From: Anthoceros angustus
Lineage: Eukaryota; Plantae; Anthocerotophyta
Assembly (NCBI GenBank): GCA_010909165.1
Contig: VJWM01000259.1
Coordinates: 124,001 to 188,000, forward strand
Length of the DNA: 64,000 nucleotides
Direction of reading: 5' to 3'
Shown one piece after another: positions 1 to 50,806 of this stretch. Numbering within the stretch: position 1 is the stretch's first letter; each line of letters opens with the position of its first letter. The position numbers and the translations under genes were made by a program. Under the pieces are notes generated by a model. The model made no database searches. It had not been told where the DNA came from and saw nothing but the letters and a program-made list of their open reading frames with translations.

Positions 1-3000
1 CCTGCTGCCATCGCTCATGGATTGCTTGCTAGGAATCATTATCTCGGTTGAGGGTTCCACTGGCTCGCGTGCTTGGAGCCATACAAAGTGGCGCGTGCAA
101 GTGGTGCCGCAGCACGTTGGTTTTGCTTCCACGATGGGCTTTCGTTGCTGCTGAAATTGATGTCGGCGGTGCATAGCACGACGTCCGCTACCTGGTGGGT
201 GCTGGATATGCAGTGGGTGGATCAGGGCGGTTGGTCGATCTAAACGTGAACGGATGACCATGGCTACGGAATTTGCTTGGTGACCCGTCTCACGGAGAGG
301 TGTCTAACTCATAAAAATGCACCATTAGACTCTTGATAACTATGGAGTGAATAGAATATGAATATGCTTGCCTTTTTCCAACTGCTATCACCTTTTATTG
401 GTAGAAGGACATAGTGCCTTACCCACTTGGGCATATTAACACCTCATATGGGCCATGTGTACATTTATGACCTCGGACCTTGTTTCACTTTTAATATATA
501 CTACTAGGCTATAAATGAGGGATCGACCTATGTGCATGTTTGTTAAAGATGGGTTGATTCCTTGTGGGTTATCATTGGTAGGAATGGCTGCCCAATAGGA
601 TTATATAACTTGTGAGCCAGTGGTTGGATAGAATTTGCTACCCAATGAAATCCCTTCCTCCAAACTTTGGTTGGGGTTCCTCCCTTCCTCTCCTATGCTT
701 AGCCTCTACCTTTGATGATTGTCATTCTCTCTATTGCTCCCGCCTCTATTTGCGTGATCACCTTACTTAGTACCTTGGTCTCTTTGTCGTTGCCTCCCAA
801 GCTAGCCATGGCTACCAAGGTTGAACCTTTTCTCCTCTCTTACTTCACTATGCAACCTTAGAATTAGTGGATGTGCAATGGATCCCGTCTCACCAAGGAT
901 CCAAACGGGCCGATGATCCCTTTTGGTGGTCAAGAAGGGAAGGGGAGGTGTTGACCAACACCATCTCGTGCATCCAAGAAGCTAGACCTTGATTTGGTCA
1001 TCCGGTCTAGTCTTCTAAACCTCAAGTTGTTTTTTCGGTATGATCTAGAAGCAGTACCGGATACATGACTCAATGAATAGGGTTTGTGTCTTACGGATTC
1101 AAAATACCGGTTTGATCAACACAAGATACTTCGTGCTCCAGTCGACGGGCTATGAATGTCGTTGTTCGTCTGCAATTTTGTCCGGATGCCTCGTATTGGA
1201 TGCATGTCGGAATCGTCATCCTTTGGATAATCACCAAGGTCCCGCTTAGGTGAAGCATCGCATCTTGCGAGCTCGACGTGATGTCGATGTTTGATACATG
1301 TAGCAAGGAATGACGGTGGCCGTGGGAGGACAACGACGCAGTTGAATGATGTAAAATAGGTGGTATCGCTTGTTTGGCTTCAACCGACGATCGAGCACAA
1401 GATTGCATGTGAATGGCTTCAAGATAGCATGCGAGATAGATATTGCTACCGGATGCTCGCTTAAGCATCGGGATGTCGATCTAGTTTTGCATATCGCGTT
1501 GCTACCACGGTTGGATGTACCGCTGTTGACTGCATAGATTGCACGAATATTGGGAGTCCGCCGAGGACAAGGGCCTCTTTGGACGCTTTTGATCGGACGG
1601 GTTGGACGATCTGGTTTTGCTCCCTCGCCGCCGCCATGGATTGCTTGCTAGGAATCATTATCTCGGTTGAGGGTTCCACGTGGCCCGCCGTGCTTGGAGC
1701 CATACAAAGTGGCGCGTGCAAGTGGTCGCAGCAACGCTGGTTTTGCTTCCACGATGGGCTTGCTGTGTGCTGAAATTGATGTCGGCGGTGCATAGCACGA
1801 CGTCGCTACAGCTGGTGGGTGCTGGATATGCAGGGTGGATCCGCACGGGTTGTCGTCGATCTAAACGTGAACGGATGACCATGCCTACCGAATTTGCTTG
1901 GTGACCCGCCTCACGGAGAGGTGTGTCTGACGCCCGAGGATCGACTATGGGCAAGAAAAAGGGCTGCTGGGCGGGGCGATTGACTCTGCGGCCTCTTTTG
2001 GACGCTTTTGATCGGACGGGTTGGACGATCTGGTTTTGCTCCCTCGCCGCCGCCATGGATTGCTTGCTAGGAATCATTATCTCGGTTGAGGGTTCCACGT
2101 GGCCCGCCGTGCTTGGAGCCATACAAAGTGGCGCGTGCAAGTGGTCGCAGCAACGCTGGTTTTGCTTCCACGATGGGCTTGCTGTGTGCTGAAATTGATG
2201 TCGGCGGTGCATAGCACGACGTCGCTACAGCTGGTGGGTGCTGGATATGCAGGGTGGATCCGCACGGGTTGTCGTCGATCTAAACGTGAACGGATGACCA
2301 TGCCTACCGAATTTGCTTGGTGACCCGCCTCACGGAGAGGTGTCCGACGCTCAGGAGGATCGACTATGGGCAAGAAAAAGGGCTGCTGGGCGGGGCGATT
2401 GACTCTGCGGCCTCTTTGGACGCTTTTGATCGGACGGGTTGGACGATCTGGTTTTGCTCCCTCGCCGCCGCCATGGATTGCTTGCTAGGAATCATTATCT
2501 CGGTTGAGGGTTCCACGTGGCCCGCCGTGCTTGGAGCCATACAAAGTGGCGCGTGCAAGTGGTCGCAGCAACGCTGGTTTTGCTTCCACGATGGGCTTGC
2601 TGTGTGCTGAAATTGATGTCGGCGGTGCATAGCACGACGTCGCTACAGCTGGTGGGTGCTGGATATGCAGGGTGGATCCGCACGGGTTGTCGTCGATCTA
2701 AACGTGAACGGATGACCATGCCTACCGAATTTGCTTGGTGACCCGCCTCACGGAGAGGTGTGTCTGACGCCCGAGGATCGACTATGGGCAAGAAAAAGGG
2801 CTGTAGGGGCGGGGGCTGATTGTCTGTGGCCTCTTTTGACGCGATTTTGACCGGACGGGTTGGAGGATTGCTGGTTTTTCGCTCCCACCGCCATCGCCAT
2901 GGATTGCTTGCGGGAATGATGACCATATGGTTTGATGGTTCTGCGTGCTGATGCTTGAGCCATAAACGCGGTGACGGCGATGGTTTTGCTACCACGGTGG

Positions 3001-4293
3001 ATGTTCCTTTGATCGGGAATTGGTGTCTGGTGATTAGCGATGTCTTTCGGTGGCGGATCTTTGGATGGGCGGGATGGGTGGATCCAGGGGTTGTCGATCT
3101 AAAACTTGACGGGATGGCCATGCGCGCCAATCCTTTTTCACAACCGGATCTGGTGATGCGGGTCAATGCGTGGGCTTGTGATGGGTACATGGGCGTGCGG
3201 CTGGAGAGAAAAGCGATCGGCAATAAGCACGCGTTGCTTACGAATGCATGAGGATGTGTAGTGATTGAGATTGGTGTAACTTGATGAGAAAATGATCACA
3301 GTGGTATCTGCTGCGAGGAAGTGTGTGATGGCCGTGAGGGTGAGCGACTTGGAGAGAAAAGATCAGAGGGTTACTGTTTATTGGTGACAATGATACGTGT
3401 GTGTGATGATGGAGATGCGATGGCCTTGGGCCTTACGCCGTTTGTTTGCTTCTTTGCAAGGATGTGTATGAAATTGTGACGAGACTAGTGAGCGAAAAAC
3501 GATCCTCATCAAGTGGATGCACATTGTTTGCTTCTTTGCAAGCATCTGGTAGGTATGTAATGGTTGAGACTCATGAGCGGCCCGGAGAAAAAGCGATGTA
3601 AAGTGGATGCACGTTGTATACTTGCAAGGATGCATGTGGGTGTTTGATGATTGAGGTGATGAACGGCCTAGAGAAAATAATGCAAGCAATGATGTGCTCG
3701 CTGCGCAAGGATGCATGTGGGTTTGTGATATTGAGATCGGCGGTTTGGAGAAGCAAGGCAGCTATAGATGCACACTACTCCTTGCTACAAGGATGCTTGC
3801 GGTAAAGGTTTTGATAACTTACGGTGACATACCAACCATGGACCACAAATGGTGGTAGTCATTGCTACTTTGACAACCACGGAAATTAATGGTGACATGC
3901 ATGATTTTTCTCTCTCATGAACAAATGATGTTCCTATTTGCCGTTGATCCACAGTTGCTAGCATGCTGAAAAATGGAAGAGTGCTTATAGACATCTTGGT
4001 TCACTTCTGTCGATTCGATGTAAATCTAACTACTTACCGGTGCGGAAATTGCCGGACACATTGCATGCCTTTACACAATCATCCGTGTACGCTACAAATG
4101 TGATATACTCATACCAATGGAGGGCTGGGCGATGCCGGATCTCTCACACATGGGGGTTGCTTACGAATTAGGAGACCTATGGTCTCGAACTTGGAAAATC
4201 CTTCCTGGGATTATTTTAAAATATATCTCTAAGCAGCTTTGCTTGAAATGACCTGCTAGGTCGGCACACATTTATGCGATGTAGTCTAGAAAT
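1..4293 (+). repeat. U block copy 1 (partial, rearranged); pseudo-LTR-like non-coding block of the PLE array
   Basis: Same modules as later U copies (GAGAGGTGTCTAACTCATAAAAATGCACC..., ~418-bp units, CAAGGATG subrepeats) and the same end GATGTAGTCTAG(G)AAAT before CTAT. Confidence 0.85.
1577..2830. repeat. Three near-identical ~418-bp tandem units, followed by a diverged paralogous unit to ~3200
   Basis: CTTTGGACGCTTTTGATCGGACGGG recurs near 1577, 1996 and 2414; an identical 74-aa ORF appears at 1680, 2099 and 2517. Confidence 0.95.
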
Positions 4294-4302
4294 CTATCTA
4301 TC

Positions 4303-49700: not shown

Positions 49701-50285
49701 TGTGGGTTTGTGATATTGGGGTCAGCGGTTTGAGAGAAAAGCAGGGCGGGCTATAGATGCACACTACTCCTTGCTACAAGGATGCTTGCGGTAAAGGTTT
49801 TTGATAACTTACTGTGGTGACATACCAACCATGGACCACAAATGGTGAACGGTACATTACGCTACTTTGACAACCACGAAATTAATGGTGACATGCATGA
49901 TTTTTCTCTCTCATGAACTGATGTTCCTATTTGCCGTTGATCACAGTTGCTAGCATGCTGAAAAATGGAAGAGTGCTTATAGACATCTTGGTTCACTTCT
50001 TGATTCGATGTAGGTCTAACTACTTACCAACTGGTGGCGGAAATTGCGGACACATTGCATGCCTTTACACAATCATCCGTGTGCACGCTACAAATGTGAT
50101 ATACTCATACCAAGGAGGGTGGCGGATCTTGGATCTCTCACACATGGGGTTGCTTACGAATTAGGAGACCTATGGTCGAACTTGGAAAATCCTTCCACAG
50201 GATTCGGATTTTAAAATATATCTCTAAAGCAGCTTTGCTTGAAATGACCGCTAGGTCAGCCATTTATGCGATGTAGTCTAGGAAA
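46762..50285 (+). repeat. U block copy 6 (~3.52 kb)
   Basis: Same termini and module order. Confidence 0.9.
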
Positions 50286-50806
50286 TCTATCTATCTATCT
50301 ATCTATCTATCTATCTATCTATCTATCTATCTATCTATCATCTATCTATCTATCTATCTATCTATCTATCTATCTATCTATCTATCTATCTATCTATCTA
50401 TCTATCTATCTATCTATCTATCTATCTATCTATCTATCTATCTATCATCTATCTATCTATCATCTATCTATCTATCTATCTATCTATCCATCTATCTATC
50501 TATCTATCTATCATCTATCTATCTATCTATCTATCTATCTATCTATTCATCTATCTATCTATCTATCTATCTATCTATCTATCTATCTATCTATCTATCT
50601 ATCTATCTATCTATCTATCTATCTATCTATCATCTATCTATCTATCTATCTATCTATCTATCTATCTATCTATCTATCTATCTATCTATCTATCTATCTC
50701 TATCTATCTATCTATCTATCTATCTATCTATCTATCTCTATCTATCTATCTATCTATCTATCTATCTATCTATCTATCTATCTATCTATCTATCCATCTA
50801 TCTATC
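50286..50806. repeat. (CTAT)n microsatellite, ~520 bp, ending the PLE array
   Basis: Read directly. Confidence 0.98.

Follow-up and report, generated by a model that had tools for sequence, protein, structure and literature searches.

What assembled the repeated sequence that fills positions 1-50806 of a 64,000-nt stretch of the Anthoceros angustus genome (contig VJWM01000259.1, positions 124,001 to 188,000; hereafter the window, numbered from its first letter), and how could an element that appears to carry no nuclease have done so? Self-BLAST and exact border motifs resolve the sequence into copies of two blocks, a 4.06-kb core carrying reverse transcriptase (RT) motifs and a non-coding block that we call U. 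We conclude that the locus is probably an old, inactive head-to-tail array formed by one family of nuclease-less Penelope-like elements (PLEs) of the CxC type, belonging to the branch of the Chlamys group termed PLE-X. An initial annotation, made from the letters of the window alone, had proposed a CxC-type PLE that targets CTAT repeats; the first part of that proposal is borne out below, and the second needs qualification.

The blocks follow one another as U1-core1-U2-U3-core2-U4-U5-core3-U6-(ATCT)n, so that the order U-core-U-U-core-U-U-core-U-(CTAT)n given in the initial annotation was correct. Three copies of the core and six of U, plus one fragment, all lie on the + strand, and self-BLAST of the window found no inverted copies of at least 300 bp. 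An ungapped repeat search returned no repeat family, because the copies differ by approximately 20-28 small indels per kb. Core2 (29171-33209) is the least broken copy, and core3 spans 42187-46248. The earlier map has to be corrected for core1, which is interrupted at 7669 by a 10,653-bp (10.65-kb) long terminal repeat (LTR) retrotransposon, foreign to the PLE, at 7670-18322; the 5′ part of the core lies at 4303-7669, and the 3′ part, with the RT thumb up to the GAGTGGAGGG end, at 18328-19043. U1 (295-4302) lacks its first 358 bp and carries, at 1572-2911, a 419-bp tandem repeat in 3.2 copies. U2 (19064-24092, 5029 bp) has an internal duplication of about 1.4 kb, and U3 (24093-29170, 5078 bp) and U4 (33246-38586, 5341 bp) also carry internal duplications. 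U5 (38587-42186, 3600 bp) is the simplest copy and U6 (46755-50295, 3541 bp) is the final block of the array. The length of about 3.5 kb first ascribed to U therefore fits U5 and U6, but the range is 3.5-5.3 kb, with U2, U3 and U4 reaching 5.0-5.3 kb through their internal duplications. The array extends past the left edge of the window: positions 1-303 match positions 1734-2038 of U5 at 90%, and 1-294 is a fragment (U0) of the 419-bp-repeat region of a further U. A three-way alignment places a microhomology deletion joint between U0 and U1, across a common GAGAGGTGT, at 295-303.

The motif CATCTATCCAAGAGAG marks the U starts at 19064, 24093, 33246, 38587 and 46755, and GGAAATCTATCTATC the U ends at 4302, 24092, 29170, 38586, 42186 and 50295; the cores start with TTGTTAC (4303, 29171 and 42187) and end with GAGTGGAGGG (19043, 33209 and 46248). 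There are 172 occurrences of the 11-mer ATCTATCTATC, every one of them on the + strand and confined to nine block borders, against 0.03 expected from shuffled sequence. The statement that every block boundary is a CTAT tract thus holds for these nine borders and fails at the joint at 295-303, which is the sole border without CTAT. Furthermore, five of the nine are not free microsatellite but an invariant terminus of U: the three U-to-core and two U-to-U joints consist of the same 11 nt, which belong to the U end. Tracts of variable length are seen only after a core and after the last U. They are the (TATC)5 hinge between core1 and U2 (19044-19063, directly preceding 19064), the (TATC)9 hinge between core2 and U4 (33210-33245), a degenerate (TATC)n hinge of about 126 units with 84% matches between core3 and U6 (46249-46754) and a terminal (ATCT)n tract of about 128 units with 95% matches (50296-50806), which adjoins a fragment of a Ty3 pol gene from 50807.

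None of the three cores retains an intact open reading frame (ORF), and all are frameshifted pseudogenes; the CxC and RT motifs that had been claimed for them are nevertheless present in all three. Core1 has a frameshifted ORF1-like region, a CxC motif at 6366-6392, a DKA motif at 6773-6787 and RT motifs A to C. Core2 has an open stretch of 309 codons (31299-32228) with DKA and motif A, followed by motifs B and C (32327-32470) and the thumb (32704-32763). Core3 has an ORF1-like region (42952-43530), the CxC linker (44216-44242), DKA (44635-44649), motif A (ADITRCYEAIP, 45084-45116), motif B (GIPMGFSCSP, 45384-45410), motif C (RYIDD, 45514-45528) and the thumb (45756-45815), with about 89 codons between motifs A and B (45116 to 45384). 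The linker reads C-V-C in core3 and core1, and one of its Cys residues is lost in core2; both are invariant in 10 aligned sequences. LDKAN is found in all three cores, and among 39 homologues its D and K are invariant and its A nearly so. The alignment also contains HVRT, GLNxIPL, YKxHKxxxRWLTN and a KRRxLPF...SNRP thumb. The 309-codon stretch of core2 retrieved 204 homologous proteins among 1.8 billion, the best with 38% identity, and the named ones come from Chara braunii and Selaginella moellendorffii, where they are annotated as hypothetical proteins; a larger protein collection gave no match to the core closer than 48%. Intact relatives align by tblastn over 43126-46018 of core3, in several frames.

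To which class of RT do the cores belong? Pfam returned a single, sub-threshold RVT_1 match on 19 ORF pieces of the cores, NCBIfam returned nothing, and a sequence-profile search of the PDB was likewise empty. Because none of these gave an assignment, the class was decided by fold, using the intact relative P0001 rather than the broken copies of the window. Over about 600 residues, P0001 and the cores show 35-38% identity (tblastn E 1e-92), and the AlphaFold model of P0001 has a pLDDT of 93. The top 16 fold matches of this model in the PDB are all telomerase reverse transcriptase (TERT), with E values of 4e-10 to 5e-5. The best group II intron RT follows at 2e-4, approximately five orders of magnitude behind, and no LINE or retroviral RT comes close. 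The model also includes a helix-and-strand insertion, a candidate for the segment (IFD) that Naiad/Chlamys elements have between RT motifs A and B. One could still suppose that the cores belong to another class (LINE, DIRS or LTR) and that the U blocks are true terminal repeats, given that Pfam offers only sub-threshold RVT_1 matches and no direct family assignment. This is very improbable and largely refuted: TERT leads the fold matches by five orders of magnitude, Naiad/Chlamys elements are listed with these same CxC, DKA and thumb motifs, integrase, RNase H, APE and RLE domains are absent from the cores, and U occurs in doublets and has neither TG..CA ends nor target duplications. The assignment of the RT to the CxC (Naiad/Chlamys) type of PLE made in the initial annotation is therefore supported by the CxC linker, the DKA motif, the gap of about 89 codons between motifs A and B, the PLE-type thumb, the Chara and Selaginella homologues and the TERT-like relative, with motifs and the relative's fold standing in for a tree.

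Craig et al. (2021, PMC8557442) describe the Naiad/Chlamys clade as having a GIY-YIG nuclease domain at the N terminus, a CxC linker, DKA or DK in place of DKG, RT motifs A and B separated by an insertion, pseudo-LTRs (pLTRs), a microsatellite bias and usually no hammerhead ribozyme. The same study describes a third type, PLE-X, from Chara and spike mosses, with BLAST hints in mosses, which keeps the CxC, has no nuclease and bears an N-terminal extension with CxC-X(1-8)-C; its route of integration is there stated to be unknown. In core3 of the window, the region 42952-43530 upstream of the CxC linker resembles the separate 534-residue ORF1 of a metagenomic relative, L001 (34% identity over 42952-43494, E 1e-24), and the N-terminal parts of the homologues P0017, P0053 and P0060 also align with it. 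The sequences have a Cys motif in common, C-x-C, a spacer, C and then W-x-D. In the window, K-C-I-C at 43159-43170 is followed 11 residues on by the third Cys (CxC-X11-C), and the ORF1 of L001 has C-G-C-X8-C. The structure model of ORF1 is poor (pLDDT 48.5), and the ESM Atlas gave only sub-0.9 leads for it, none usable, so that neither result assigns a nuclease or DNA-binding function to ORF1. Neither GIY-YIG nor any other nuclease domain was found in the 19 core ORF pieces, in ORF1 of the relatives or in 49 homologues. A hammerhead ribozyme was detected neither by Rfam gathering score over the whole window nor at E<=10 over 33200-50850, and a scan of both strands for the pattern CUGANGA-helix II-GAAA was also negative, a result in which decay of the copies could hide a weak match. 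The relatives L001-L003 and L008 likewise gave no hammerhead. We note that 89-bp repeats within U (21916-22177, 36374-36565 and 37742-38083) contain CTGATGA...GAAA strings that are superficially hammerhead-like; helix II and an Rfam match are absent.

The suggestion that the family is undescribed stands at the family level, but the element matches the described, nuclease-less PLE-X type and is not a typical Naiad or Chlamys. The window family resembles the PLE-X elements (for instance PLE-X1_sTam) of Craig, Yushenova, Rodriguez and Arkhipova (2021, PMC8557442) in having a CxC before the RT and no GIY-YIG, in an N-terminal CxC..C extension encoded apart from the RT part (as two ORFs in L001 and L009), in having its nearest named homologues in Chara and Selaginella and in its head-to-tail, pLTR-type layout. 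It differs in that no canonical hammerhead was detected, in that the Cys spacer is 11 residues rather than the published 1-8 and in that its units are hinged and ended by TATC, whereas those of Selaginella occupy a fixed site in 28S rDNA and those of Chara are dispersed. The window RT is, moreover, only about 35-40% identical to any protein in the searched databases. The Selaginella protein P0017 was considered as a representative of the published rDNA-targeted PLE-X and set aside; its locus, L008, contains neither rRNA nor ribozyme, and the link is by motifs only.

Three other groups invite comparison. With the endonuclease-positive (EN+) Chlamys and Naiad elements, the window family shares the CxC linker, DKA/DK, a putative long A-B (IFD-like) insertion, pLTRs, head-to-tail multicopy insertions, lengthening of the element by internal tandem repeats, association with a microsatellite and the usual lack of a hammerhead; the N-terminal GIY-YIG is theirs alone, and the microsatellites reported, (CA)n and (C)n with Chlamys and (TA)n with Naiad, differ from the (TATC)n of the window. 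A second comparison is with Athena and Coprina, which Gladyshev and Arkhipova are said to have described in 2007 as nuclease-deficient PLEs at telomeres. These resemble the window family in having no nuclease, in forming head-to-tail chains and in the proposed entry route, in which the 3′ end of the RNA pairs with a simple repeat where a 3′ end of DNA is exposed. They sit at chromosome ends on telomeric repeats, whereas the window array lies on a tetranucleotide microsatellite near Ty3 and copia elements, and their proteins reportedly have no CxC linker. The third group consists of MRC1 and the other non-autonomous partners of Chlamys in Chlamydomonas, which, like U, are non-coding blocks with pLTRs in head-to-tail multicopy arrangement beside an autonomous PLE. 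Those partners resemble the autonomous element at the 3′ end, whereas U shares the TATC run alone with the core.

This last comparison leads to the question of what U is. Each U has an AT-rich 5′ part of 1.6 kb, followed by a G-rich 3′ part in which repeats of 419 bp and of 89 bp make up the sequence; Pfam recognized no coding sequence in U, and comparison of U with the core ends showed no similarity above chance except for the TATC run. The intact relatives are informative here. L001 has a 2.3-kb non-coding region after ORF2. The L009 contig continues from this 3′ non-coding region into the 5′ start of the element itself and ORF1, and the same joint is present at the start of L001. Thus, a head-to-tail joint (3′ end to 5′ start) is conserved between L001 and L009, and it puts the 3′ non-coding region upstream of the next ORF1. 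No microsatellite is present at the head-to-tail joints of these relatives, and a short (CT)6 lies at one flank only. The core itself has almost no leader. Alignment to L001 places the start of ORF1 within about 100 nt of the U-to-core joint, and from an ATG in U, 30 nt short of its 3′ end, a frame runs across the ATCTATCTATC joint into the core (42157-42441 and 29141-29386). A nearly leaderless core with an ATG inside U fits the start sites borne by pLTRs that are reported for Penelope and Chlamys-3_cRei (PMC8557442). At the end of the array, the same ATG of U reads through the microsatellite (50266-50874). It is plausible, from the relatives, from the nearly leaderless core and from the U-to-core joint, identical in all three units, that U is the long 3′ non-coding part of the unit and appears as a pseudo-LTR wherever a U-only copy lies upstream; the U|core-U arrangement is seen three times in the window. 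The description of U as a pLTR in the initial annotation is thus plausible, with the 2.3-kb 3′ region and the conserved joint of L001 and L009 in its favour; calling it unusually large is not warranted, in that a pLTR is whatever 3′ portion a truncated tandem copy has kept and its size is not unusual in itself.

Alternatively, U might be a separate non-autonomous retroelement that used the core RT through a common TATC 3′ tail, as MRC1 does with Chlamys, so that two elements would have accumulated side by side in a single TATC tract to form the array. We regard this as unlikely, though a serious rival. U has a constant 5′ end and a TATC-ended 3′ end of its own, and so does the core, with similarity limited to the tail. 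The two occur in a ratio of six (or seven) to three, U-U doublets have formed, the longest and purest tract comes after a U, and head-to-tail multicopy non-autonomous partners of Chlamys are documented (PMC8557442). Against this reading, the period-3 series of U-core-U repeated three times is one of only 3 such phased orders among the 84 possible for six U blocks and three cores. In addition, the nearly leaderless core always lies directly 3′ of a U with an identical joint, the unit of the relatives includes a long 3′ non-coding region, and the 3′ end of published non-autonomous Chlamys elements is like that of their autonomous partners, where here there is the repeat alone.

On the single-element reading that we favour, the unit would consist of the 4.06-kb core, a TATC hinge and a non-coding U of 3.5-5.3 kb ending in ATCTATCTATC, and the core would encode, in order, an ORF1-like region with CxC-X11-C, the CxC linker, DKA, a telomerase-like RT with a long A-B insertion and the thumb. 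A U-only copy ahead of each full unit would give the pseudo-LTR appearance U|core-U, and this upstream U would supply the promoter and the 5′ leader, with ORF1 starting at or just inside the U-to-core joint, as suggested by the alignment to the relative and by the ATG 30 nt inside U. The RNA of the element would terminate in UAUC repeats, and the RT, having no nuclease of its own, would start cDNA synthesis on a DNA 3′ end within a complementary GATA/TATC tract. The usual target tract would be the tail or hinge of an earlier copy, leading to a head-to-tail pile-up joined only by TATC runs. All copies in the array have decayed. We propose this pairing route because every copy is joined through, and ended by, the same tetranucleotide repeat.

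How the array reached its present form can be read in part from the divergence of its copies. By substitutions, copies are 3-6% apart over the 5′ part of U; the corresponding distance is 5-7% for the cores and 8-15% for the G-rich 3′ part of U. The two LTRs of the nested element differ by 7.7%, so the whole array is old. The trees are near star-like, that of the U 5′ part being star-like, and the only pairings, in the tree of the U 3′ part, join U1 to U3 (support 88/87) and U4 to U6 (91/90); no core has sister U blocks on its two sides. Several frame-breaking deletions are common to core1 and core3, at places where core2 keeps the frame of the homologues. A dead common ancestor of whole units was considered as the source of these common frameshifts and was dropped because the signal is confined to a patch of 0.7-1 kb (core1 6738-7460); elsewhere in sliding windows the three units are equidistant. 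We read the patch as the result of gene conversion among copies that were already dead. U2 and U4 carry internal duplications of similar appearance, whose breakpoints differ. Patchy gene conversion, duplications within U, the microhomology deletion and the nested LTR element show that the array was reshaped at the DNA level after its formation. Between repeat copies (1-50800), we also counted 18-28 indels of 1-5 bp per kb, about one for every two substitutions, with a low transition/transversion ratio of 0.9-1.9, and none of these indels in the young pair of 419-bp repeats in U1. The very high indel rate may be a sign of strong decay by deletion, or of long-read assembly errors that persist in old repeats.

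The initial annotation had interpreted the locus as three pLTR-ORF-pLTR units of a CTAT-targeting family. That these were three independent insertions is not demonstrated: the relationships among copies are a mosaic, and the U blocks flanking a core are not each other's closest relatives. One scenario that dispenses with such insertions is that one or a few retrotranspositions were followed by tandem duplication or unequal exchange of a 14-kb (approximately) core-U-U segment, so that the CTAT borders would have been inherited and would say little about targeting. This scenario has an appreciable, though minor, probability. It accounts for the base-identical joints (all three U-to-core and both U-to-U) and for the observation that no copy is 5′-truncated at a random point, and DNA-level exchange is directly visible in the array. 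The pairing of U blocks of the same position in the 3′ part (U1 with U3, U4 with U6) also agrees with it, but the signal from position is weak, and the 5′ part of U contradicts it; similarly, the frame-breaking deletions common to core1 and core3 would favour it, were the likeness of these cores not limited to a patch of about 0.7-1 kb in units that are otherwise equidistant.

Several observations weigh against the explanation that we prefer, a retroelement family with U as its 3′ part. If each pLTR had arisen in a single event, the U blocks around a core should be sisters, and they are not; gene conversion may have erased that signal. The identity of the two U-to-U joints fits a precise mechanism, and inheritance through duplication of DNA equally well. 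U shares with the core ends only the TATC run and could therefore be a separate non-autonomous element, as discussed above, and the head-to-tail joints of the relatives are without microsatellite. Canonical hammerhead ribozymes occur in published PLE-X families, and none was found here by the searches described. Finally, there is no intact copy, so that activity, transcription and priming remain proposals drawn from decayed sequence.

A further question is whether the TATC tracts are target or tail. The sole visible junction between array and host sequence is at 50806/50807, where the 0.5-kb (ATCT)n tract meets an open frame leading into a Ty3 RT (RVT_1 at 51641-52282). Thus, the term CTAT-targeting used in the initial annotation is inseparable, within the window, from CTAT-tailed, there being one host junction at which the tract adjoins the middle of a Ty3 pol. 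The latter position gives a hint, in that a pre-existing microsatellite is not expected there. One possible interpretation is that the RT itself makes long TATC tracts by reiterated copying of a short template, as telomerase does, in which case the microsatellite would first be a product and only later a landing pad. The RT fold is nearest to TERT, the tracts that follow a core or U range from 2.75 to about 128 units, and the terminal 0.5-kb tract lies where no prior microsatellite is expected, all of which agree with this idea. We nonetheless consider it improbable: long tetranucleotide tracts are explained by ordinary replication slippage, the array runs past the left edge of the window, so that there is no empty site for comparison, and PLE RTs are all TERT-like, none of them being known to add repeats. 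A bolder version, which we regard as doubtful, is that a nuclease-less element builds telomere-like interstitial arrays, its UAUC-ended RNA priming on GATA/TATC ends, its RT, possibly by reiteration, both making and targeting its own microsatellite, and its Cys-rich ORF1 or CxC domain reading the repeat.

The remaining features of the window belong to other elements. The LTR retrotransposon nested in core1 has TG..CA ends and a 5-bp target duplication, TGGCT, at 7665-7669 and 18323-18327. Its LTRs lie at about 7670-10334 (2.66 kb, including a 740-bp internal tandem duplication in this 5′ LTR) and 16415-18322 (1.91 kb), and its interior contains the duplications 11165-12773 and 12893-16250. A gag-type zinc knuckle (12490-12876) is the sole recognized domain and no pol was recognized, and the element is probably non-autonomous or heavily decayed. 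To the right of the array, a Ty3-type element (50807-54000) begins in mid-pol directly after the (ATCT)n tract, with a frame from 50811 into RVT_1 and RNase H (51641-52282); its gag and protease part should lie beyond the far side of the array, outside the window. A copia-type RT fragment is found at 60361-60945 (RVT_2, E 9e-33), and its nearest database proteins are 50% identical.

The relatives outside the window also deserve description. The intact relative, represented by L001 (1-6632) and L009 (1-6099) from metagenome and Logan contigs, has two ORFs, the 2.3-kb 3′ non-coding region and the head-to-tail joint, and one of its 3′ ends adjoins the (CT)6 run. Dozens of variants of its ORF1, with 72-99% identity, occur in ENA, JGI and Logan samples, and this type is apparently widespread. 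A more distant relative, P0012 (782 aa), is encoded on the contigs L002-L007 from marine TARA and other metagenomes, where it is always followed, 4 nt on, by a conserved 518-residue ORF without a Pfam domain, a gene order unlike that of the window family.

The array extends the poorly sampled PLE-X group to another plant genome, and the two-ORF architecture is common to its abundant environmental relatives. For annotation, it means that 50 kb resembling satellites and unknown repeats can be described as one retroelement family with its non-coding partner block. The array also points to a testable integration route for nuclease-less CxC elements, in which a repeat-ended RNA would pair with a repeat-bearing DNA end, the same pairing route that has already been proposed for the telomere-bound Athena and Coprina.

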